Below are positions 2,881 to 52,418 of a stretch of DNA of 64,000 nt, piece by piece. Below the pieces are notes generated by a model, which made no database searches, was not told the origin of the DNA, and was given only the letters and a program-made list of their open reading frames with translations. Position 1 is the stretch's first letter; every line of letters begins with the position of its first letter. The stretch spans positions 447,234-511,233 of the IMG/VR virus record IMGVR_UViG_3300046517_002304, one strand, 5' to 3'. Made by a program: the position numbers and the translations under genes.

Positions 2881-3777
2881 TTAATGCCTTAAAACAAACT
2901 CGCAAAACCTTTGCTCTATCTGAAATATCGGCAATCTGCGGCCAGAGCTTAAGTCGTCATCTGGGGATAATAACCACCTTTGCTTAATTCTATTGGCAAT
3001 AATAGGGGTTTGAAAAAATGGCTCTACGTGGTCTTTCACTATCTTTTCATTCACTCTCCGCAACCCAGCCATATCAAACATTTTATAATATTCACCAAGA
3101 GGATGTATGATTTTTCTGGTATAAGTAAGCTTATATCCCATTTTTTCTATTTCATCGTCAGTAAAAACAAGATGAATATACGCCTTATTAATTTGTTGAT
3201 ACAAATGAGAGCCATGCTTAGAGCACCACGGATGACATACTACGTAAATCTTACCAGAATCGGCTAAGATAGATTTAATGCTTTGCATCATACTATACGG
3301 CGAAAGAGAGTGATCTATAACATCATATAAAAAAATAACATCATACTTGCGACTTGATATACTTTGGAAATCACCGGTCAAAAACAAATTATCATTTTTA
3401 GCCCGCTTATCCCATCCAGAAGAAGAAATATCATATCCATAAGACGCCTTAACTCCCCAGTCTAGCGCTCTTTCACAAATATGCGCCTCTCCGCACCCGA
3501 AGTCAAGGAATACCTTATCTTTTAATTCGATAGATGCCTCGGCCAAAATAGCATCGGCTCTACTAAATTTATCATCTTCGGAATTAGAGTCACATATAAA
3601 AGACGGATCAACCGCTGCTGGCCAAGCATCACTATGGAGCATTTTTACAAGACTTTGATATTCAATTTCTCGTAAAAACGAAGATATGTCGCTTATTTTT
3701 ATATTGTCATCCAGTATTATGTCTGGATCTAAGGACGACAGCAACGGCCAAGTGTTATTAAGTTCTGATATTCTCAC
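2881..3777 (-). CDS. Class I SAM-dependent methyltransferase
   Basis: LDFGCGEAH motif I, YDVIFLYDVIDH, ILADSGKIYV. Confidence 0.85.
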   Translation of the reverse strand: MRISELNNTWPLLSSLDPDIILDDNIKISDISSFLREIEYQSLVKMLHSDAWPAAVDPSFICDSNSEDDKFSRADAILAEASIELKDKVFLDFGCGEAHICERALDWGVKASYGYDISSSGWDKRAKNDNLFLTGDFQSISSRKYDVIFLYDVIDHSLSPYSMMQSIKSILADSGKIYVVCHPWCSKHGSHLYQQINKAYIHLVFTDDEIEKMGYKLTYTRKIIHPLGEYYKMFDMAGLRRVNEKIVKDHVEPFFQTPIIANRIKQRWLLSPDDDLSSGRRLPIFQIEQRFCEFVLRH

Positions 3778-3787
3778 ACACTATTTA

Positions 3788-4699
3788 TCATTCATTCCGA
3801 AAACTATACCATACACCGTAGTTATAGAATAAACTAAACTCACCTCTACAGGGAATTCGCGCCCATTCAACGTCTGCTGTTTTAATCTGCTGAATAGTGT
3901 TAACTTGATCAAAGCCATATATTCTATAGTATTTAAGCGATTTGGTAGCAACATCAAGTCTAGTAAATCCGCCTAATGGCAAAATATCACCAAACATTTT
4001 CTTTCCAGCAAACATCAAGCATTGATAAAAATCTGGAATAAACGGAAAATTCCTTCTTCCGTTCAGCTTATCCACACGGATCAAATGATATGACGATTTT
4101 ATCTTGTGGACTTCTTTATCTTTATCAAGCGCACCCATTTTAGCTGGCACCCAATCGGGCGCAGGGATATGTTTTTTGTTCTTATCTATGAGAACAACCG
4201 ACGCACAGGAAGCAAGGCTGCTATGTGCAATTTTTTCTATCTCAATTACGCTTACGGTATGAGGGATATCTGATATAGGAATCTTACTGCAATAACGACC
4301 ATCCATGTATTCTTCAAGATAATCAACTGGACTATCATGGTCCTCACAACAATTATATTTAAAATGACGCAGTGTCTCTGGGCCACCGTTATCATCACCG
4401 TAATAATGGCTTCCTACAATCTTACTTCTGTAATTATCAGACTTTCCATTTAGCCACTTCCCGCCGCGCCACAAAATACAATCTTCTTCACCATAATCAA
4501 GGACAAAATCTTTTATGCATGACCGCCAATTCACATCGTCTAGCGTGCTGTATTCATAGTACTTCTTAATATCCCCCCTATAGCAAACTAAATAACTCAA
4601 ATCATAAAGATCTATATTAGCCGGCATATTATAGCCGCAATCTATGAATTCAAATACCGTATCTTCACTCAGTTTTTGGGCTTTGCGTCTTCTAGACAT
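3788..4699 (-). CDS. Hypothetical protein
   Basis: 303-aa ORF, tightly packed with neighbours. Confidence 0.6.
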   Translation of the reverse strand: MSRRRKAQKLSEDTVFEFIDCGYNMPANIDLYDLSYLVCYRGDIKKYYEYSTLDDVNWRSCIKDFVLDYGEEDCILWRGGKWLNGKSDNYRSKIVGSHYYGDDNGGPETLRHFKYNCCEDHDSPVDYLEEYMDGRYCSKIPISDIPHTVSVIEIEKIAHSSLASCASVVLIDKNKKHIPAPDWVPAKMGALDKDKEVHKIKSSYHLIRVDKLNGRRNFPFIPDFYQCLMFAGKKMFGDILPLGGFTRLDVATKSLKYYRIYGFDQVNTIQQIKTADVEWARIPCRGEFSLFYNYGVWYSFRNE

Positions 4700-38005: not shown

Positions 38006-40456
38006 ATGGAAGATTGTAAGCGACTAGTACTTCTGTGCCAAGAAGCACTAAAAACAAAAGGCATAGACGACACAATACACAATAACCGCCTCAGGTGGGA
38101 ACTCAAGGAATTACAGGTCAAAAATGACTGCGGATATTTCCTGAACATCCATGATAAAGGCGTTAAAAACCAACCTAACCATAAAAATGTATTAGTTCCC
38201 TATTTGCTTGATATCTGTAATGAATTTGATATTACCAAGCTTCCAGAATTCCTAATGGGAGAAATGCCAGATATTGACGTTGACTACCTCCCAGAAATAC
38301 AACAATATCTCAAAAATGATTATGTTCCCAAAGCGTTCGGAGCAGAATACGTTTGCAATATAGGAAGCCACAATACGCTTGGCGTAAAATCTGCGCTTAT
38401 CGACACAGTAAGAATTTATAGCAAAGATAGAGACGAAATTCTTAAGATTACAACTAAACTCCAAGACAAGAATGACGAAGGCAAGCCTATTTCCTTTGAA
38501 GAAGCGATTAACTCTAATTCCGACTTAAAGAAGTATTTGGCCGAAAATCCAGAAATTAAAGAAGCAGCGGGAAAGCTGGTCGGTAAAACTAGAAGCTTTG
38601 GGCAACATGCGGCTGGTGTTATCATATCCAGCGTACCTTTAAAAACCCTAGTGCCACTTATTTCCGGCAAAGATGGGATGCAATGTAGCGCATGGGGCGA
38701 AGGACAGCATAGCCTAGATTTAAGTACAGTAGGATTAATTAAATTTGACTTTCTAGGAAGCGAATCCTTAAACAAAGTCATGCAATGCCTTAAGCTTATA
38801 AAAGAAAGACATGGTATTGAAAAAGTATGTGCGGCACCAGGTGGAGACAACTGGTCAGACATTTCTTATCTTAACGATCCAAAATGCCTAGAAATGGCTA
38901 GTAAAGGCGATCTCAAAACTATTTTCCAGTTTGATTCCGACGTTGCGCGTAAAATGTGCAAAGATGGTGGCGTTGATAGATTTGAAGATTTGGTAGCCTA
39001 TACGTCATTAAACCGCCCAGGATGCTTGGAAATGGGTACAGATGTGGAATTCATCAAGCGCAAAAAGGGCGCTTCATATGAGGTCCACCCGCTTCTAGAG
39101 CCTATCCTAAGAGATACTTACGCGCTAATGTTATATCAGGAGCAACTCTTCCGTATTCTTAACGTGGTGGGCAAAATTCCAGAACATCAATGCATGGAGG
39201 TTCAAAAAGCAGTATCTAAGAAAAAAGTAGATAAGTTCGCAAAATATAAAGAAATGTTCGTAGAAAATGGCCAAAAAGTATTAAACCAATCAAAAGAAGA
39301 ACTAGAAAAACTTTGGGCATTAATTGAAGCGTTCGCCAAGTACTCCTTCAACCTCGCGCACGCCTGTAGCTATACCTATGTTTCTTCCAGAATGTTATGG
39401 TTAAAATGCCACTACCCACTTGAATGGTATGCGGCCTGTATGTCGTCTTTAAAAACAGCCGATTCTAAGCTACAAGAGTATCGTTACGATGGTGTTAAGC
39501 ATGATATAGTTTTTAACCGTCTTGACATTAACAAATCCAAGAGTAATTTTGCTATCGCAGAAGACAACTCAATCTACTATGCTTTCTCTAAGATTAAGGG
39601 AATCGGTGATGATATTGCGGATAGAATTACATCATTGCAACCCTATGCTGATTTAAAGGATTTTCTACATAAGTTCGGAGTTCTTTCTAATACACTAAAG
39701 CCGCTTATAGCACTAAGAATATTCGGCGATGACACAGTTTCTCTATGGAAGGAATATGAAAGATTTAAAGATGGCATTGACCAGAAAATAGAAGATTTAA
39801 ACACTAAGCACGCTGAAACAATAAACAAGCACGCTTCGGAATTAATGTCTCTGCTTCCAGAACAATTGATGGATATCAATTCAATAAGTGAAATAGACAA
39901 ATTAGAAAACATTATAGATGCTAAAATCTATAAGAAGTTATTAAAAATTAAAGAAAAAAACGGCAAAACGATTGAGACATTTAATAAGAAACTAGCCAAA
40001 CTTGAGAATTATGAAGTTAAAATTGAGCCTGAATACGAAAAGCTACTCCTAGACAAAGATGCAGCGGAAATCGCATTTTACGGATTTCCTTGGGACAGCC
40101 CATTATCCAAATACGTATCGGCAGAAGAACATCACTTTGACTGGATGGATGCTAACGGATTAGAAGTAGCGCCCATTAATGTAAGAATTACAAACATACA
40201 AGAAAAACAGGGAAAAGTTAAGTTTTATCAATTAACGGTTCAGGATATTTTAGGTGCGGAAAAGAAAGCAAACATATGGAACTCTGACTATAATATCTGG
40301 AAGGAATTGTTAGTAGTTGGTGCGCTAATAAGAATACAGTTAAAGGCTCCAAATGGCGGTTTTCCAACTTATACGATGACATCGGAACGATTTAAAAAAT
40401 ATGTACGTGGAGTTAACGATTTTAGAATAGTGAATTTAGCAGGAGAAGTAAAATGA
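38006..40456 (+). CDS. dnaE: DNA polymerase III alpha, C-terminal half (palm catalytic Asp, fingers, HhH, OB)
   Basis: MPDIDVDY, GQHAAGVII, GLIKFDFLG, IFQFDS, SLNRPG, YQEQ, YSFNLAHA, KIKGIG; no PHP domain. Confidence 0.95.
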   Translation: MEDCKRLVLLCQEALKTKGIDDTIHNNRLRWELKELQVKNDCGYFLNIHDKGVKNQPNHKNVLVPYLLDICNEFDITKLPEFLMGEMPDIDVDYLPEIQQYLKNDYVPKAFGAEYVCNIGSHNTLGVKSALIDTVRIYSKDRDEILKITTKLQDKNDEGKPISFEEAINSNSDLKKYLAENPEIKEAAGKLVGKTRSFGQHAAGVIISSVPLKTLVPLISGKDGMQCSAWGEGQHSLDLSTVGLIKFDFLGSESLNKVMQCLKLIKERHGIEKVCAAPGGDNWSDISYLNDPKCLEMASKGDLKTIFQFDSDVARKMCKDGGVDRFEDLVAYTSLNRPGCLEMGTDVEFIKRKKGASYEVHPLLEPILRDTYALMLYQEQLFRILNVVGKIPEHQCMEVQKAVSKKKVDKFAKYKEMFVENGQKVLNQSKEELEKLWALIEAFAKYSFNLAHACSYTYVSSRMLWLKCHYPLEWYAACMSSLKTADSKLQEYRYDGVKHDIVFNRLDINKSKSNFAIAEDNSIYYAFSKIKGIGDDIADRITSLQPYADLKDFLHKFGVLSNTLKPLIALRIFGDDTVSLWKEYERFKDGIDQKIEDLNTKHAETINKHASELMSLLPEQLMDINSISEIDKLENIIDAKIYKKLLKIKEKNGKTIETFNKKLAKLENYEVKIEPEYEKLLLDKDAAEIAFYGFPWDSPLSKYVSAEEHHFDWMDANGLEVAPINVRITNIQEKQGKVKFYQLTVQDILGAEKKANIWNSDYNIWKELLVVGALIRIQLKAPNGGFPTYTMTSERFKKYVRGVNDFRIVNLAGEVK

Positions 40457-40818: not shown

Positions 40819-41499
40819 ATGACGTGCAGAAAATACGTACGCGGATCATACCCCACTAAAGGGAAGTGTTCGCCTTGTGGCGTTTCATTGTGTAATTCTA
40901 AATTGCTACAATGCTGCGGTAAAATCTGTCCGCCTCCAGCGTGCCCGCAAATAGAAAATCAATATGGCATCGGCTGCTGCGCAATCATTGTAGATGGCGC
41001 AAGAACTATGAATTACTCTATAGAATCATCGTGTCCATGCCTAGATGGACTTACCGGCACATTTCAAGCTCTGGGGAATGGGGGTGAGGTAACATCTTGG
41101 GGAGAGGATGGCCATCACCTCGCTAGCCCTCAGTGCGACTGTCGGGAAGGCGGATGCCTAGGACTTCCAGATACATTCAATAAATCTACATTCAGCATGA
41201 CGATCAGGTGCGACAGTGGTGGATTTTCGCTACTGGCGCAAACTTTCGGCGGGAACAACCGAATGTGCGAAGGCGGCTCCTGGGTATGCCAAATGTCTGC
41301 AAATGCATCATGGGTGTGCTGCGATACATCCATGCCGTTACCACTAGAGCCAATAGGCATTGACGGACAAGCATGCGATAGTTTTTCTTACACCTTTGAG
41401 GGATTTATGATGAAGCCTGATTCTTTTTTTAATAGAAATACATGTGGCTGTCCATGTGCTCAAGGATCTTCTATATCCGTTACAGTTACAAATATATAA
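40819..41499 (+). CDS. Cys-rich late (probable virion) protein
   Basis: More than 25 Cys; TAAATA 4 nt upstream. Confidence 0.65.
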   Translation: MTCRKYVRGSYPTKGKCSPCGVSLCNSKLLQCCGKICPPPACPQIENQYGIGCCAIIVDGARTMNYSIESSCPCLDGLTGTFQALGNGGEVTSWGEDGHHLASPQCDCREGGCLGLPDTFNKSTFSMTIRCDSGGFSLLAQTFGGNNRMCEGGSWVCQMSANASWVCCDTSMPLPLEPIGIDGQACDSFSYTFEGFMMKPDSFFNRNTCGCPCAQGSSISVTVTNI

Positions 41500-41502
41500 A
41501 AT

Positions 41503-42027
41503 ATGACAAGATGTAACACGCCAGGCAATCAAAAGTCCTGTTATGTAATAATAGGATTTACAAGTAACATCAAACTAGAGGCCGGAAGCCCAAATACATT
41601 TGACCTCCATTGCGTAAATCAATTCTACTCAATCGGCGATCAAACAATAACTGAAAATGATATCATAAAAAAATATTACTGTAGTGATGGTAGTGACGGA
41701 CATCTACCCTGCAATGTATCATCGGAATGGGCGAATTGTAGCGTACAAGGTGTAACAGTATATCTCAATATCGGAGGACCATACTTAACGCCGCCGGTTG
41801 ATGTGCATGATGGAGACAATATAACAGTGATAGTCACCTTTCCCGGAGATGCACCAATAAACCCCCCCCTGTCCTTAGGAAGATTTCCTGACGGCATTGA
41901 GTGCGTACAGTCTATGCCTATGTTCGTCTTTAGCTACTATAAGCCTAGCCAAAACAAGATAGTTATAAACAGACAGGCATTAATTAGACAAATTAAAGCC
42001 GACCAAAAACGTAGAAATATCCGATAG
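41503..42027 (+). CDS. Cys-containing probable virion protein
   Basis: Follows the Cys-rich gene. Confidence 0.55.
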   Translation: MTRCNTPGNQKSCYVIIGFTSNIKLEAGSPNTFDLHCVNQFYSIGDQTITENDIIKKYYCSDGSDGHLPCNVSSEWANCSVQGVTVYLNIGGPYLTPPVDVHDGDNITVIVTFPGDAPINPPLSLGRFPDGIECVQSMPMFVFSYYKPSQNKIVINRQALIRQIKADQKRRNIR

Positions 42028-42090: not shown

Positions 42091-42963
42091 ATGAGTCTAA
42101 AATCATTCGAAGAGTTTGTAAAAAATAAAGGTGGAGTTCCTTACGTGTTTTCGGAAAAGATTCCACCAAAGTCAATTTCTGCTGATTCAGAAGGCGATGA
42201 AGAAGGCATGGGATTGCTTGGAAGTCCTCAGATGATGGACAAAGAACAACCCCCACTAACGCGGGTTGAGAAAAAGGACATGGCCGATCCAGAGTATACG
42301 AAGAATGGCGAAAAACTAAAGACTCAAAAAGAAGGCGTTGAACTAGTTGAGCATCGTGGCGAAAGCGATGATTTATCAATGTCAAGTATTGATGGCGGAA
42401 AATTTTCGCCATCAATTAGCGAAGTTGCTTCATATACGGCTAAGTTAATTAAGAAGCACCCTCATACAGCAGAGCACTTTGTTAGAAACCTAAAGAAGCA
42501 CGGCAGTTTTGAGGGATTTATCGCTGAGGCCGTTGAGCACCCAGAAACATTCGCGTGTCTAGCAAATCACATCGGGCATGACGAACATGGTCCCCGCCAT
42601 TCAAAAAAGATGGTCAAGGCCCTAATGGCGCATCACACTGCAAAACATGCTATTAAAGAAAGCGTTGATGGTCCTCGTGGTGGCGATTTCGGTGGCGGAA
42701 TGCCTTCGGCTCCTCCAGCACCAATGGGAGTTGCGCCAATGCCAGTTAATTCAGATCCTACCGGGCTTTCACCAACGACCGGAATGAGTGGGATGGGTGG
42801 AAGCGGGAACCTGAGTACAAGCCAAGCGCCGCCGGCCGTTCAGATGCCTGCTCCATCCGAGTCAGCACACAAGGGCGAAGGGTACCACAACCTGGTATCA
42901 GAAATGAGCAAGGAGCCGGAAATGCACGATGCGATGCGTGAATGTTGCGGCATGGGATACTAA
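42091..42963 (+). CDS. Probable head/internal protein with low-complexity P/G/M tract
   Basis: MSLKSFEEFV N-terminus resembles a T4 capsid-targeting sequence; followed by a terminator. Confidence 0.6.
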   Translation: MSLKSFEEFVKNKGGVPYVFSEKIPPKSISADSEGDEEGMGLLGSPQMMDKEQPPLTRVEKKDMADPEYTKNGEKLKTQKEGVELVEHRGESDDLSMSSIDGGKFSPSISEVASYTAKLIKKHPHTAEHFVRNLKKHGSFEGFIAEAVEHPETFACLANHIGHDEHGPRHSKKMVKALMAHHTAKHAIKESVDGPRGGDFGGGMPSAPPAPMGVAPMPVNSDPTGLSPTTGMSGMGGSGNLSTSQAPPAVQMPAPSESAHKGEGYHNLVSEMSKEPEMHDAMRECCGMGY

Positions 42964-42977
42964 CTTAGTCATAAGTT

Positions 42978-43006
42978 AAAAAAAGCCGCTTTAAGCGGCT
43001 TTTTTT
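42978..43006. terminator. Bidirectional intrinsic terminator between convergent genes
   Basis: AAAAAAAGCCGCTT-T-AAGCGGCTTTTTTT. Confidence 0.9.
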
Positions 43007-43012
43007 ATTCGA

Positions 43013-43555
43013 TCAATCCCCATTACCCTTTTTGTAAATTTTCTTGATCTGGGATAAATCTTCCTTAGACGGCTTGCTACCACGATACTTCTGATATAAT
43101 GGCTGCGCCTTGCACTTATGCTTCCAAAACTTCTCAGTAGCAATCTGTATTTCACATATCATGCCACCAATTACAATATCTACATGCACAGTTCCATAAT
43201 AGCCAAACTCATACTCATTAGGACTATCATTATGGGCGACCTTCTTAACAATGAAATGCTTCTTGATATTATCAACAATTTTAGATATTTGATTTTTGGT
43301 ATCTACAAGAATCGCGGCCCTTAATATGTCAAATACCTTAGATGGAGACTTATTCCTTTTCTTGGTTTTATTATTAAACGACTTCTCGCTTTTAATATCT
43401 ATGACAATCTTATGTCCATCAGCAGAATGCTTGAGTAGCGTAGCAAATTTTGGCTTCAATTCTAAAGCCATTTTCTTTGCTTTATCATAAGTTTGAAAAT
43501 CCTGCTTTTTAGCAATCGGCTGAGGATTTTTCTCTATCCATTCTTTAAAGTCCAT
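43013..43555 (-). CDS. RelA/SpoT-domain small alarmone synthetase-like protein
   Basis: IKSEKSF..K, DILR, GYYGTVH, EIQIAT, LYQKYR. Confidence 0.85.
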   Translation of the reverse strand: MDFKEWIEKNPQPIAKKQDFQTYDKAKKMALELKPKFATLLKHSADGHKIVIDIKSEKSFNNKTKKRNKSPSKVFDILRAAILVDTKNQISKIVDNIKKHFIVKKVAHNDSPNEYEFGYYGTVHVDIVIGGMICEIQIATEKFWKHKCKAQPLYQKYRGSKPSKEDLSQIKKIYKKGNGD

Positions 43556-43569
43556 ACATTATTTATGAA

Positions 43570-43764
43570 CTAGGATTTCTTCTTTTTCTTTTTACGATGT
43601 TCGGCCCTATCACCAGCACTACCAATCGGCCAACCTTCCATTGAAACTCCGGCAACACCTGCCGAGCCAGCAATATTAAAACCGAGTTTCTGCAACCTGC
43701 TTTTTGGCACGGTCCCTACAATAATTGCCCCGCCTTCTTTTAGCCATTCTTGAAACGTTTTCAT
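43570..43764 (-). CDS. Small internal-protein-like peptide
   Basis: MKTFQEWLKE matches the T4 internal-protein CTS; poly-Lys C-terminus. Confidence 0.7.
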   Translation of the reverse strand: MKTFQEWLKEGGAIIVGTVPKSRLQKLGFNIAGSAGVAGVSMEGWPIGSAGDRAEHRKKKKKKS

Positions 43765-43775
43765 ATATTATATAA

Positions 43776-43806
43776 CAAAAGCGGCCTAGGAAATTCCTAG
43801 GCCGCT
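43776..43806 (-). terminator. Intrinsic terminator after the paralog array
   Basis: AGCGGCCTAGGA/TCCTAGGCCGCT 12-bp stem followed by TTT on the minus strand. Confidence 0.8.
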
Positions 43807-43867
43807 CACTATCCAAAAAGGAGACTTGGCTCCTGACAGAAATTATATACCAACTACGCTTTAATAA

Positions 43868-44362
43868 TTAAAAGCCGCCAACTATTTCATGCACTTCATC
43901 AACACTAATTCCTAACACTTTAGAAGCATTTTTAATCTTCTTATGAAGAAGGGTATAATTAGCCTTCATTCGCTTTACGTGCTCTTTCAACTGAGGGTGA
44001 TCGGTATTATATAAAGCGTCCTCTCCCGCGTCCCAAACATCAGCATATGCATCGGCAACATCAATTTCACCAGAGCTAAAATAAGCACAAGCCAAAGATA
44101 CATTATACACAATCGGGTGTTGAACTGTGACCTGTATATCGGTACTAGCCGTAACCGAAATAAGAGACTTTATTTCTCGTATAAGAGGATGTCCCGCTAG
44201 TTTGTTTTGTTCATCATACTGAATATGGTAAATTTTCTGATTAATCTTGCTCTGCAACGCCTGCAAAGCTTTTAAATCATTAACGCTATCTATATCAACG
44301 CCTTTTTTAGCGCCCTTGATTTTAGTTTTAATAGCTTTAACTTTAGTTTTCATATTTTTCAT
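43868..44362 (-). CDS. Hypothetical protein, paralog family A (copy 1)
   Basis: Shares ND.K.L..L...I..KI, HP..K and GIS...V..IV with 44893..45354. Confidence 0.7.
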   Translation of the reverse strand: MKNMKTKVKAIKTKIKGAKKGVDIDSVNDLKALQALQSKINQKIYHIQYDEQNKLAGHPLIREIKSLISVTASTDIQVTVQHPIVYNVSLACAYFSSGEIDVADAYADVWDAGEDALYNTDHPQLKEHVKRMKANYTLLHKKIKNASKVLGISVDEVHEIVGGF

Positions 44363-44914
44363 TTAATCGCCTATTAATTGTTCAAGATCATGCATTCTAA
44401 GATTTGATACAAAGCCACATCTATCATTATAATGGTATCTTGTATTCACGCAACCAGATGCAAACCGATTAATAAACTTACGCTTTTTACCAAACGGCCA
44501 AACTCTATATTTTAACAAATAACTTAATACCGACCATCGCATAGAACTACCGCGCCAAAACTCGCCAGGCTCAATGCAAAAGGTGTGCTGGTTGGTAGTA
44601 CAGTAAATCACAGCAGGGTTTTTTAACTTTAACTTGGCTTCAATATCGGACACGACCTTAATGCGTCCTGGATTATTTGTCGTAATAAAAAATGCTTTAA
44701 ACTTTCCACTTCGGAAGTAATGTAAGTAACCCTGAAAAGAATCCCGACATGACATAGGATTCCATCCATTGGCCGAATAAACACTAGGAAGATAAAAACT
44801 AAAAGATGAGTCTACCGGAAACGGAACTCCTTCTGGAAGTTCCGGCAAACTTTCTATGTAATTACGAGAAAACATGGCATCTCTCATTGTCCTCATAAAT
44901 TGACTATGTCCCAA
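44363..44914 (-). CDS. Hypothetical protein, paralog family B (copy 1)
   Basis: CRDSFQ, FW..S.MR.S, F.SGCVNT..HYN. Confidence 0.7.
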   Translation of the reverse strand: MGHSQFMRTMRDAMFSRNYIESLPELPEGVPFPVDSSFSFYLPSVYSANGWNPMSCRDSFQGYLHYFRSGKFKAFFITTNNPGRIKVVSDIEAKLKLKNPAVIYCTTNQHTFCIEPGEFWRGSSMRWSVLSYLLKYRVWPFGKKRKFINRFASGCVNTRYHYNDRCGFVSNLRMHDLEQLIGD

Positions 44915-45354
44915 ACATCGCCCTCTGATATGCCGAATTCTTTCGCAGTCTTTAATACTTTTTCTCTAATCTGTTTTTGAATTATTCTAATATCCTTAAT
45001 CCTTTGTTTTATTACAGGATGATTGCCACCCTGTATTTTATTCTCTTCTACAGCAGGATAATAATCCCCTTTAAGTTCCACGTAGTCTACTGCAATTTCG
45101 CTGCCTTGATCGTATGAATCTACGATTAGAGAAACTCTAAATTCCAGTGCTTTTTTAGAGGGCACAGTAACATCAAACTCACACCTTCCATTAATCTGCT
45201 GTGCCAATAAACGAATTTCTTTTACCAATGAAAAGCTTGAAAGCTTATTCTTCTTAGCACGATCCTGACTATCAATCTTAGATATTTTATTATCAATACT
45301 TTCTCTAAGCTTAGTCAAAACCTTACGATCATTAATTTTTTCAACATCAATCAT
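44893..45354 (-). CDS. Hypothetical protein, paralog family A (copy 2)
   Basis: See copy 1. Confidence 0.7.
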   Translation of the reverse strand: MIDVEKINDRKVLTKLRESIDNKISKIDSQDRAKKNKLSSFSLVKEIRLLAQQINGRCEFDVTVPSKKALEFRVSLIVDSYDQGSEIAVDYVELKGDYYPAVEENKIQGGNHPVIKQRIKDIRIIQKQIREKVLKTAKEFGISEGDVWDIVNL

Positions 45355-45971
45355 ATCGCATCTCCCATAATTTTCTTGAGTTCTTTACGATTCACAAAGC
45401 ATTTATCAACTTGCTTCGGAGTTAAATTATAAAAATGATCACACCAGCCAGTAAATTTAGGCGCATCATAATAACTATAACCATTATTATGCCTAAAAGT
45501 CTGATAGCGTACATAATGATTGCCGTTTAAAAACTTATTAACGGCAACCCTCGTATTGCGCGATGAAAAATACTCTGACCTACGTATCGTAGAAACAACG
45601 TTGGCCCTATAGCTTCTACCGGCTCTTATTAAAGCTGTCAGTAAAGAAAACCTAACTCTCTTCATCCAAAAACCGGTCAGCTTAATACAAACAATATTCT
45701 TTCCGTCAGTTCTATATCCATTACACCGAAATCTTTTGGGTACCTTAGACTTAATCTGAAAATCTTTCAAAAATTTTATAATATTTCCTAAGTGAGCGCC
45801 ACTCTTACACTGATAAAACAATCTTCTCGGATACGGATTATAGCGAAACGTATCATCCACAGATTCACGACAATACTCCCAATACTGGTAATTGTCGTTT
45901 ACTAAATAAAATGAATCTTTATATTCTCCATAAATATCATCGTTAGATGGAGCTTTAATCAATCTTTTCAT
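45351..45971 (-). CDS. Hypothetical protein, paralog family B (copy 2)
   Basis: CRESVD, FW...VRFSLLT. Confidence 0.65.
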   Translation of the reverse strand: MKRLIKAPSNDDIYGEYKDSFYLVNDNYQYWEYCRESVDDTFRYNPYPRRLFYQCKSGAHLGNIIKFLKDFQIKSKVPKRFRCNGYRTDGKNIVCIKLTGFWMKRVRFSLLTALIRAGRSYRANVVSTIRRSEYFSSRNTRVAVNKFLNGNHYVRYQTFRHNNGYSYYDAPKFTGWCDHFYNLTPKQVDKCFVNRKELKKIMGDAI

Positions 45972-45975
45972 TAAG

Positions 45976-46515
45976 TCACCTACAGATTAACTTGGAAACA
46001 TCAGGAAGTAATTTTAAATTTTCAAAAATACCAAAATCAGGATTGTAATGAATCGCCGTGTTCACACAGCCTGATTTAAACTTTGCTAAAAATTCTTTTT
46101 TCAAATCAGTATCAAAGTATGGGCCAACATACCCCCGAGCCTTAAATACAGAACTAAAAACAGAAAGCCTCATCGGACTAGCAAGCCAAAATTTGCTCAT
46201 TTCAATATAAGTGATACGTTTCTCATCAGTAGGAAAAAAATTAGTGCGATCTAAAGTATCAATATTTAATTCTTGTTCAATATCTTGAACCGGCTGAATA
46301 TGCATTTTAGATGCACCCTCTGGTGCTCTCAAATAAAGAATGTGTCTTTTATCTTCGCTAATTTTCAAAATTCTGCTCTGAAATACGTCCCTGCAAAGAT
46401 ACCACGCTTTATCTGTAAAGCTGAGAAAGTCAGCTATTAAAAATGGATACGACGAGAAATCATAATTAGCATGTGTTGGGGGTATCTTTACACTAGATTT
46501 AAATGGCCAAAACAT
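45976..46515 (-). CDS. Hypothetical protein, paralog family B (copy 3)
   Basis: CRDVFQ, FWLASPMRLS, FKSGCVNTAIHYN; start moved to MFWPF after the GAGG RBS. Confidence 0.7.
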   Translation of the reverse strand: MFWPFKSSVKIPPTHANYDFSSYPFLIADFLSFTDKAWYLCRDVFQSRILKISEDKRHILYLRAPEGASKMHIQPVQDIEQELNIDTLDRTNFFPTDEKRITYIEMSKFWLASPMRLSVFSSVFKARGYVGPYFDTDLKKEFLAKFKSGCVNTAIHYNPDFGIFENLKLLPDVSKLICR

Positions 46516-46516
46516 A

Positions 46517-46750
46517 TTAGACCTCTTTATAACCTTTTGCCGTTTTCTCTTTAACCATCTTAGACACATGCTTAATGGCATCGTCGTTACTTGAGAATTC
46601 CTTAATACTAAAACTGCCAGCAGCGCCTATCTTGCCATACTTAAAAAATACTACGTCTTCTTCACAAAAAACGCTCCAGAACTTATTAGACCGCCCCTTC
46701 GTAAATTCAAACCTACGAAAGACTTCTTTAACGCCATCTAGTTTTTTCAT
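46517..46750 (-). CDS. Stand-alone WGR domain protein
   Basis: RRFEF..G.SNKFW...YGKIG..G...K.F......A.......EK..KGY. Confidence 0.9.
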   Translation of the reverse strand: MKKLDGVKEVFRRFEFTKGRSNKFWSVFCEEDVVFFKYGKIGAAGSFSIKEFSSNDDAIKHVSKMVKEKTAKGYKEV

Positions 46751-51083: not shown

Positions 51084-52418
51084 TTATTTATCGGCTACTG
51101 GCTCCAATAAATTAATATCAAACTTATAGTCAATAGCCCGGCCTCGTGCCTCGCTCAAAAACCTACTAAATAGCAATCCGTGGTGCACACTATCAATATC
51201 TGTAATGCCCATTGTATAGAGCACTAGGCTTGACGCTGCACTACCTCTGCCTGGATTAATAGCATTGGTTTCACTAGTTCCCAAAACATCTCTACAATAC
51301 CTGCGAGCTTCATCAATCACTTGTTGTTGTATAAGAAAATACGATGAAAATCCTTTACGGGTAATCAAATCATACTCTTCCGCAATTCTCTTCTTGTACT
51401 CAGTTGTGTTAGGAAGATTTCGTTTTTTAAAACCAACTTTAATTGCTTCTTTTAACTTTTCGTCAGCATCAGGTATTTCCGGCAGTTTAATAGATCGGTC
51501 AATCCTAACGCCTTCTGCCATCTGACAAATTCTTACAGTATTACGCTTTGCTTCTTGATAAATGTCTAGTGGAATAATATCACTAAAATCGTTCTCCCAC
51601 TTTTCATTTAACTGTTGTTCATTCTTGAAATAAATTTGCTTATCTTGTACCTCAAACATATCGTTACCAGCCGCAACTAACTTATCTAGTTCAGCTCTAG
51701 TTCTCTTACTTTGAACCAACAGTAAATTTGTTTGCGCTTCGTGATCTTGCTGGTCCACATAATGCACATCATTAGTTAATACCATATGAATGTTGTGCTT
51801 TAAATGCATCTTTACCAAAAACTGGTTGAACGCTCGTTGTGGCGCATAATCAATCATCATCATTTCAAGATAATAATTATCACCAAACACAGAACGATAA
51901 TCTAGAATCATTGCTTCGGCTGCATCTTCACCATGATTAACAAATGCCTGTCCTACTTCCCCCATAATACAGCAAGAGCCAACAATTAATCCTTCAGAAA
52001 ACTTCTTAAGAACGTCCCAGTTAACTCTAGGCTTGTAATAAAAGCCATGTATCTCGGCAAAACTAGTAATCTGTACTAGGTTGCTGTATCCTACATTACT
52101 AGCCGCAATTAAAAGAAGATGATAAGATTTCTTAATCTTAACTCGTTCTTCTGGGGGTAGGTCAGCAAAAGTATCTGGGTTATGCGCTCGCTGTATGTAT
52201 ATTTCACAAGCAATTACCGGCTTTGTCCCAAATTTATCACATGCTCTTAGCTGTGATGGAACAGCAGCCATTGATCCATGATCGCTCAAGCAAAGATACT
52301 GATGATTATTTTTCTTTGCTTTCTCAGCGTATTGATGGCAGAAACCAACAGCATCTAGAATACTCGCTTCAGCACTATGAAGATGAAGATGCTCAAATCC
52401 AGTAATTTCCTGTTTCAT
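51084..52418 (-). CDS. dnaE: DNA polymerase III alpha, N-terminal half (PHP domain plus first palm segment)
   Basis: HLHLHS, SDHG, HLLLIA...GY.NL, FYYKPR, YYLE, TNDVHY, GFSSYFL, PGRGSAASSLV.Y..GITDID, LLFSRFL. Confidence 0.95.
   Translation of the reverse strand: MKQEITGFEHLHLHSAEASILDAVGFCHQYAEKAKKNNHQYLCLSDHGSMAAVPSQLRACDKFGTKPVIACEIYIQRAHNPDTFADLPPEERVKIKKSYHLLLIAASNVGYSNLVQITSFAEIHGFYYKPRVNWDVLKKFSEGLIVGSCCIMGEVGQAFVNHGEDAAEAMILDYRSVFGDNYYLEMMMIDYAPQRAFNQFLVKMHLKHNIHMVLTNDVHYVDQQDHEAQTNLLLVQSKRTRAELDKLVAAGNDMFEVQDKQIYFKNEQQLNEKWENDFSDIIPLDIYQEAKRNTVRICQMAEGVRIDRSIKLPEIPDADEKLKEAIKVGFKKRNLPNTTEYKKRIAEEYDLITRKGFSSYFLIQQQVIDEARRYCRDVLGTSETNAINPGRGSAASSLVLYTMGITDIDSVHHGLLFSRFLSEARGRAIDYKFDINLLEPVADK

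Follow-up and report, generated by a model that had tools for sequence, protein, structure and literature searches.

A RelA/SpoT-type synthetase with a capsid-targeting-like leader in an uncultured T4-superfamily megaphage

RelA/SpoT homologue (RSH) synthetases have already been described in several phage and secretion settings. These include the small alarmone synthetases (SAS) of phages and the toxic members of that group (toxSAS), the delivered (p)ppApp synthetases Tas1/Apk1, which uses the type VI secretion system (T6SS), and Apk2, a MuF head protein, and enzymes that are exported by the Sec or type VII secretion (T7SS) routes. Phage T4, for its part, is known to package cargo by means of a capsid-targeting sequence (CTS) placed at the N-terminus. 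The first 10 residues of T4 internal protein (IP) III are enough for packaging, where residues 4 and 7 serve targeting and 8 and 10 serve processing (PMC9026906), and the protease gp21 cuts after L/I-x-E (PMC9026906, PMC8442874). The T4 internal proteins are unrelated cargo with only the leader in common (PMC3012670); in the T4 record IPII and IPIII start MKTYQEFIAE followed by A, and IPI starts MKTFKEF...ITE followed by A. This study concerns a stretch of 64,000 nucleotides (nt), referred to here as the window, which covers positions 447,234 to 511,233 of IMG/VR record IMGVR_UViG_3300046517_002304. It contains the gene for a single-domain RSH pyrophosphokinase of 180 amino acids (aa) at window positions 43013..43555 on the minus strand, and the protein begins with a leader resembling that of the T4 internal proteins. 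When the literature was searched in full text with CTS and alarmone terms, no paper with a CTS term was among the matches listed.

The reading favoured here, to which a probability of roughly one half is assigned, is that expression of the synthetase goes along with that of the late virion genes and that its T4-CTS-like leader brings it into the prohead, from which it is ejected with the DNA and acts at the very start of infection. Such an "internal protein" with enzymatic function would be a counterpart of T4 Alt or the IPs, and would move pyrophosphate from ATP onto the 3'-OH of a nucleotide, producing a (p)ppGpp- or (p)ppApp-type alarmone or modifying the CCA end of tRNA. A separate leader-bearing NIF phosphatase would probably be delivered along with it, and an HD_4 alarmone hydrolase from a presumed early block could later remove the product. 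In this scheme we infer the late timing, the packaging, the ejection, the substrate and any cleavage from the features described below.

A capsid-targeting-like leader class

The window is the terminal 64 kb of a complete phage record of 511,233 bp with direct terminal repeats, and the sequence was found in soil and rhizosphere metagenome DNA runs. The phage is a T4-superfamily megaphage, presumed to be lytic, with a gp21-type protease and a gp23 capsid: the Peptidase_S77/gp21 prohead protease gene scores 88 bits and the gp23-type capsid gene 290 bits, a 303-aa gene lies between them in the position of the T4 scaffold gene, and an L-M-E in the capsid protein aligns with the T4 gp23 maturation site L-T-E followed by A. 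The closest database record is LR756511.1, an uncultured phage of 595 kb whose capsid protein is 60.7% identical. A megablast search of the region against a phage collection returned zero matches.

The start MDFKEWIE and the TAAATA located 4 nt upstream of it, both pointed out in the initial annotation, were read in the sequence, as was the start MKTFQEWLKE of the neighbouring 64-aa open reading frame (ORF; 43570..43764, minus strand). The neighbour fits the T4 CTS exactly over codons 1-10 (43735..43764, minus strand), with F4, W7, L8 and E10 and an L-K-E site. The synthetase leader occupies codons 1-9 (MDFKEWIEK; 43529..43555, minus strand), where F3 and W6 keep the T4 spacing of the aromatic residues one residue nearer to the Met, as in 15 other leaders of the genome. 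When a simple non-overlapping gene call of the genome (843 genes) was scanned with the strict pattern M-x(0-3)-[FYW]-x-x-[WF]-[LIVMF]-x(0-2)-E, 21 genes matched, compared to 1.3-1.7 expected from internal sequence or internal Met positions. A looser form gave 36 matches against about 7 expected, and internal Met positions match a leader-like pattern at a rate of 0.2-1%. Once obvious false positives were removed, about 28 leader genes were left, with starts of the form M-x-F-x-x-[WF]-[LI]-(x)-E. The proteins behind these leaders have little in common: with the first 12 residues taken off no pair was alike at E<=1e-3, 0 of the 20 tested against Pfam had a family, and a PHROG family was found for 1 of the 10 tested. 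The codons of the leader vary (TTT 18 times and TTC 9 times for Phe, and 11 different codons at the hydrophobic position), and the leader is kept at the peptide level. Judged by its residue pattern, the leader is a real recurrent class that matches the T4 CTS position for position.

The leader is not confined to this genome. Among 151 representatives of the synthetase family, drawn from many different metagenomic phages, 62 begin with the leader and several others narrowly miss it. When the family leaders are aligned at their first aromatic residue, the consensus reads M-x-x-F-[KS]-[EQ]-F-[LI]-x-E; this aromatic is residue 4 in 39/61 leaders, and 40/61 have a Glu two residues past the hydrophobic position, which makes an L/I-x-E site. 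Examples are MKTFKEFITE, MKSFKEFITEA and MLSFSEFIQEG. Clear starts were also seen in Paraglaciecola PANV1 gp92 (MIGFSEYLEEQ), Nitratidesulfovibrio phage SRB7757 (MIEFKQYVLME) and a 151-kb IMG/VR phage (MHRFTDFYYED). The start in Sinorhizobium phages phiM12 and phiN3 (MSLLKEFREYQ) is less clear, and the synthetase of a Variovorax phage starts MKKIRPELVRIEKL and has no aromatic residues there. The family is confined to T4-superfamily phages among the complete records examined, and Peptidase_S77 was above the cut-off in 5/5 of the other complete records with the family, or 6/6 when this genome is included.

Gene fusions in the family give a further view of the leader. The relatives nearest to the synthetase (45-54% identity) are about 310 aa long and have a NIF/HAD phosphatase domain N-terminal to the synthetase, and most of these NIF fusions bear a leader of their own at the N-terminus (MGFKTWFSEQ, MSFNLWLIEK, MENFSVWLEK, MNMEFSLWLES). 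In the genome studied here the phosphatase is a separate gene (record 3635-4108, plus strand; Pfam NIF 77 bits, DLDET motif) that lies about 24 kb from the synthetase across the record ends. Its product is a homologue (37% identity) of the NIF domain found in the fused relatives, and it starts MFKTWLETVQLEK, which is again a leader. There is thus one leader per polypeptide, with the split NIF and synthetase genes each having their own, and this is the pattern that a sorting signal predicts, if the leader is read as one. Structure prediction of a complex between the synthetase and the NIF phosphatase of this genome gave a score of 0.00, which speaks neither for nor against binding. The initial annotation had noted that no hydrolase or clear antitoxin is adjacent to the synthetase, and none adjoining it was recognised with Pfam, PADLOC or NCBIfam; however, it had missed this phosphatase and an HD_4 (Rel/SpoT-type hydrolase) gene elsewhere in the genome (record 382613-383188, 34 bits), which is 107 kb from the synthetase and has no leader.

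The sequences upstream of these genes bear on timing. On the minus strand the synthetase start is preceded by TTCATAAATAATGT-ATG, and the CATAAATA element (43560..43567, minus strand), a putative late-type motif, ends 4 nt before the ATG. The 64-aa gene has its own GTTATATAATAT element, an ATATATA variant of the motif that abuts its ATG (43765..43776, minus strand). The TAAATA belongs to a recurrent element, [CGT]TAAATA or ATA[TA]ATA, that ends 4-6 nt before the ATG and is found before 16/28 leader genes compared to 52/815 other genes (odds ratio about 20, p=8e-12). Other carriers of the element encode very large proteins (1391, 1028, 738, 2580 and 1645 aa), and the carriers that include the 1028- and 738-aa proteins have PHROG matches to virion structural protein, tail sheath stabiliser or baseplate wedge. 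The TAAATA pointed out in the initial annotation is part of a motif common to the synthetase and virion structural genes, which would fit late expression. The capsid gene itself, however, has a Shine-Dalgarno type start. The exact T4 late promoter TATAAATA was considered as the relevant motif and set aside for the looser forms, as it is upstream of only 7 genes. Leader and upstream motif recur together in related megaphage contigs.

A second element, TAGTTATCC[AG]TAA, lies about 17 nt before the ATG of 84 mostly small genes that make up one minus-strand block (record 259426-408290). Within this block the first letter of GTTATCC lies 17 nt from the ATG in 27 cases and 20 nt from it in 11 cases, always on the upstream side, and a Shine-Dalgarno sequence is usually absent. 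The block looks like an early-type promoter block that would give very short or leaderless 5' ends. It contains a single match to the leader pattern, a false positive, and the HD_4 gene sits inside it. By analogy with the T4 late promoter TATAAATA, the TAAATA element may be a late-type signal and the TAGTTATCC element an early-type signal.

Several observations weigh against delivery of the synthetase in the virion. Its own leader reads W-I-E-K, one residue short, and has no canonical L/I-x-E; only seven other leader genes in the genome share the [LIV]-E variant. The leader proteins as a class are no more basic than other proteins, unlike the T4 IPs. Four of the fused relatives keep the equivalent of the window N-terminus internally (NKEWVED, NEWVEK and similar), and because EWVEK stays internal in these four, part of the EWIEK segment of the leader may be structural; in favour of a leader, however, the Phe is lost in every fusion that keeps the remnant, and the whole segment is gone in two fusions. 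As to timing, a search of the genome for the T4 late sigma factor gp55, which had no positive control at such a distance, found no homologue, so the late-promoter reading rests on analogy and on the genes that the element accompanies. The run search listed only soil and rhizosphere DNA runs with the sequence and no RNA run, and the paper on PANV1 reports no mass spectrometry of virions. The capsid-targeting-like leader noted in the initial annotation thus stands as a recurrent class in a T4-like phage that extends across the family, but the synthetase's own copy lacks the L/I-x-E site; because it has I-E-K instead, cleavage of the synthetase, and hence its "activation by cleavage", is speculative.

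The serious rival is a role of the leader other than capsid targeting. Under that explanation the synthetase is a late cytoplasmic enzyme that is never packaged, its leader has some other purpose, for example binding to a phage chaperone or a partner unrelated to the scaffold, localisation or stability, and the enzyme would tune host or phage nucleotide pools or translation late in infection. The missing cleavage site and the lack of a high-pI (isoelectric point) bias would both fit such an enzyme, and the case for packaging is drawn from sequence. The leader also occurs on a PolyA_pol/CCA-adding enzyme in a related megaphage, a type of enzyme that is normally cytoplasmic. However, the leader matches the experimentally defined T4 CTS at each position, a gp21-type protease is present in each of the six genomes with the family that were checked, and unrelated cargo with nothing but the leader in common is the pattern of the T4 internal proteins (PMC3012670). 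On balance a synthetase that never enters the virion is considered rather unlikely, though it is the explanation that competes most seriously with delivery at infection.

The PolyA_pol/CCA-adding-type nucleotidyltransferase mentioned above is encoded on a 587-kb metagenomic contig (L015:1-948, minus strand). It starts MRRTFLEFLSLKE with CCATAAATAAGG upstream, and the leader and the upstream motif are the same as in the genome studied here.

Fold and predicted chemistry of the synthetase

The protein is a small single-domain RSH synthetase with the SAS fold. As described in the initial annotation, its motifs IKSEKSF (residues 54-60), DILRAA (76-81), GYYGTVH (118-124) and EIQIAT (135-140) are all present in the 180-aa ORF. 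The protein scores 31.6 bits against Pfam RelA_SpoT (PF04607), for which the gathering cut-off is 27, and 32 bits in a genome-wide search; it matches phrog_37685 (function unknown) at 5e-24, and an exhaustive HMMER search collected 250 cluster representatives of the family at E<=1e-3. A PDB search with the single sequence gave nothing useful, whereas a profile of 59 homologues found RelP (5e-6), RelQ, Rel and Tas1. The AlphaFold2 (AF2) model has a mean predicted local distance difference test (pLDDT) score of 93.7, with 72-80 in the first 20 residues and at least 92 in the domain. When this model was searched with Foldseek, RelP, RelQ, Rel, an exported Streptomyces synthetase, Tas1 and CapRel were all returned at probability 1.0, with template modelling (TM) scores up to 0.65 (0.64 for Tas1).

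The catalytic residues suggest an active enzyme, and the nucleotide-binding residues are where the protein departs from canonical Rel. K55, K63, D76, R79, Y119, G121 and E135 are invariant across the 59 homologues, and D76, E135 and Y119 align with catalytic residues of RelP in the profile alignment. D76 corresponds to FaRel2 D90 (Mg2+ coordination) and Y119 to FaRel2 Y128 (acceptor stacking), both of which are needed for the activity of FaRel2. The deviations reported earlier, D53 before IKS and DILRAA in place of DxxGxR, were borne out and extend to two further motifs, so that four canonical arginines are replaced: D53 (RxKS), A81 (DxxGxR), Y120 (GYR) and A139 (EIQIRT). This counts against the favoured reading as well, because with four canonical nucleotide-binding arginines missing, synthetase activity is only predicted.

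An inactive SAS fold, or one with a quite different substrate, would account for those four replacements; it might, for instance, bind host toxSAS regulators, alarmones or tRNA or act as a decoy for them. This explanation is considered improbable, and a dead enzyme in particular is unlikely, since the catalytic residues do not vary and the fusion partners are enzymes. D76, E135, Y119, K55 and K63 do not vary over 59 sequences, and there are compensating basic residues: the syn2 Arg is shifted to the invariant R79 (D-I-L-R), and R67, K147 and R158 are nearly invariant in the homologues. The protein has a basic surface (net charge +17). Active (p)ppApp synthetases likewise do without the guanosine-type syn2 and syn4 arginines (PMC12226406). 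The fusions found in the family argue for real nucleotide chemistry, since besides NIF the other members include N-terminal fusions to HD_4, 2H/LigT phosphoesterase or NDK (P0013, P0040, P0041, P0095, P0140, P0074, P0085); in P0040 the order is CTS-like leader, HD_4, synthetase. The partner domains HD_4, NIF, 2H and NDK all handle nucleotide or 3'-end phosphates, which points to chemistry of that kind for the predicted synthetase, and in what appears to be a mini-Rel layout the NIF domain takes the place of the product hydrolase. No description of the NIF-SAS and HD_4-SAS fusions as RSH architectures was found, though no literature search aimed at them was made.

The identity of the acceptor can be approached by comparison with Apk2, where adenosine-type enzymes were characterised by syn2 "RYT", syn3 "GxN" and syn4 "YH", compared to "AVR", "SxH" and "IR" in guanosine-type enzymes (PMC12226406). 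When the synthetase is held against the adenosine-type signatures, the position of the syn2 Arg matches, syn3 has Gly at the Ser position plus an extra residue, and the syn4 Arg is lost but is replaced by I-A instead of Y-H. The syn2 Arg is shifted and the syn4 Arg lost as in Apk2, and we therefore lean toward an adenosine 3'-OH as the probable acceptor, either ATP/ADP or the CCA end of tRNA.

One observation was made outside the family. A viral cluster in the ESM Atlas, 94% of whose members have Peptidase_S78_2 (an XkdF-type prohead protease), aligns to residues 20-178 of the synthetase (TM 0.75). This structural match hints that SAS-like folds may be attached to head-maturation proteins in other phage lineages.

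The cassette and its surroundings

The 64-aa gene lies 14 nt upstream of the synthetase gene and encodes a Gly/Ala-rich basic protein (pI 10.35) with a poly-Lys tail. Neither Pfam nor PHROG places it in a family, and the genome contains no paralogue of it. Both sides of this two-gene cassette carry terminator-like structures. A hairpin of 13 pairs followed by a T-run (43779..43807, minus strand), found in a hairpin scan, resembles an intrinsic terminator and parts the cassette from the upstream genes. On the other side a hairpin read directly from the sequence, A7-GCCGC-TTTAA-GCGGC-T7 (42978..43006), stands between convergent genes and reads as a bidirectional terminator; it was not flagged by the terminator scan, probably as the A and T runs can lengthen the stem. 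The weakest explanation for the locus is a toxSAS gene pair for toxin-antitoxin function or superinfection exclusion, comparable to Phrann gp29/gp30 or a CapRel-type system. It would suit the tight layout of the cassette and a small protein upstream of an SAS that could be toxic, and toxSAS encoded by phages are known (PMC7229694), but it is very improbable given that no homologue of the small gene was found beside the synthetase in relatives, where the neighbourhoods differ, that Pfam, PADLOC and NCBIfam gave zero known antitoxin or defence domains, that the 64-aa protein has a canonical CTS-like leader itself, that each gene has a separate upstream motif, and that a tblastn search against the phage collection gave no phages carrying PhRel, PhRel2 or CapRel. 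PADLOC and NCBIfam gave only sub-threshold DUF3780 matches in the region, which were disregarded.

The convergent gene (42091..42963, plus strand) encodes a 290-aa low-complexity protein rich in G, P and M. It starts MSLKSFEEFVKNKGG, a looser leader-like N-terminus, and its membership in the leader class is uncertain; it had zero Pfam or PHROG family matches. Beyond it, at window 40819-42027 (plus strand), are two Cys-rich proteins of 226 and 174 aa, each after a TAAATA/ATATATA element and without a Pfam family. Directly upstream of the cassette, at window 43868-46581 (minus strand), are tandem paralogous two-gene modules, with a protein of about 200 aa present three times (27-31% identity, common SGCVNT...HYN motif) and one of about 160 aa present twice (27% identity, E=1e-14); zero Pfam or PHROG families were found for these proteins.

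Other features were noted farther away. Two genes divide the DnaE-type alpha subunit of DNA polymerase III between them, one for the N-terminal part (window 51084-52418, minus strand) and one for the C-terminal part (window 38006-40456, plus strand), which lie on opposite strands with about 11 kb between them and both match phrog_405. A scan of the window for tRNA genes found zero. Leader-like N-termini also occur at record 153771-157614, within a few kb of the genes for protease, scaffold and capsid. They belong to two paralogues of about 470 aa (MRFRAYLESFGSFN; MRFSQFIESFGSFN) and to two further proteins that are about 73 aa long (MKTWTQYCEN; MKTWTQYLEA).

Implications and comparison with described systems

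A wider model can be put forward tentatively. T4-superfamily megaphages may load dozens of unrelated proteins by a conserved CTS-type leader, and these may include a nucleotide-signalling kit that consists of the RSH pyrophosphokinase and the NIF phosphatase and, in relatives, of the HD_4, 2H and NDK fusions and the CCA-adding enzyme. Infection would then open with an injected alarmone or tRNA-end burst that is reset by an early phage hydrolase, and the leader would be a tag for ejected effectors. Should the leader indeed be a signal for capsid targeting, an alarmone-type synthetase would here be used as a T4-style internal protein, a route unlike those of T6SS, MuF, Sec and T7SS. On the same condition, phages would be shown to attack or rewire the host stringent response or tRNA-charging machinery before any phage gene is expressed, and a 10-residue motif would allow ejected proteins to be predicted from the sequences of uncultured T4-like phages, with about 28 candidates in this genome.

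The long RSH enzymes (Rel/SpoT) are one point of comparison. Some members of the family are HD_4-SAS proteins, including the one with the order leader-HD_4-SAS, and resemble the catalytic N-terminal half of Rel. However, the family is without TGS, ACT or other ribosome-sensing domains, the closest relatives have NIF/HAD at the position of the hydrolase, and in the genome studied here synthetase, NIF phosphatase and HD_4 hydrolase are each encoded by a gene of their own. The toxSAS (PhRel, PhRel2, FaRel2, CapRel) are likewise single-domain SAS on phage genomes, and the basic surface of the megaphage protein would be compatible with tRNA binding. They differ in that no conserved antitoxin partner is present here, in the lack of tblastn similarity to phages with those systems, and in the separate family phrog_37685.

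Among delivered (p)ppApp synthetases, Apk2 (MuF, temperate phages) and Apk1/Tas1 (T6SS) also combine an RSH synthetase with a module for delivery; that of Apk2 is a phage-head-associated one. They share with the megaphage protein the shifted syn2 Arg (D-x-x-R) and lack, as it does, the guanosine-type arginines of syn2 and syn4, and Tas1 is among the nearest folds. However, the module here is a 10-residue CTS-like leader without a MuF or PAAR domain, and there are no adjacent immunity genes. Apk2 also belongs to temperate phages whereas the T4-superfamily megaphage is presumed lytic, and syn3 and syn4 differ (GYYGTVH, EIQIAT).

The T4 CTS and internal proteins share most with the leader class. 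Aromatic residues at 4 and 7, L/I at 8 and E at 10 are the same when the neighbour's MKTFQEWLKE is set beside MKTYQEFIAE and MKTFKEF, many unrelated cargoes have only the leader in common, and a gp21-type protease and a gp23 capsid are present, with L-x-E kept in the capsid protein. The differences are that the cargo here is an RSH pyrophosphokinase, that the synthetase leader has I-E rather than I-x-E, that there are about 28 leader proteins compared to three IPs in T4, and that the megaphage system is known from sequence alone.

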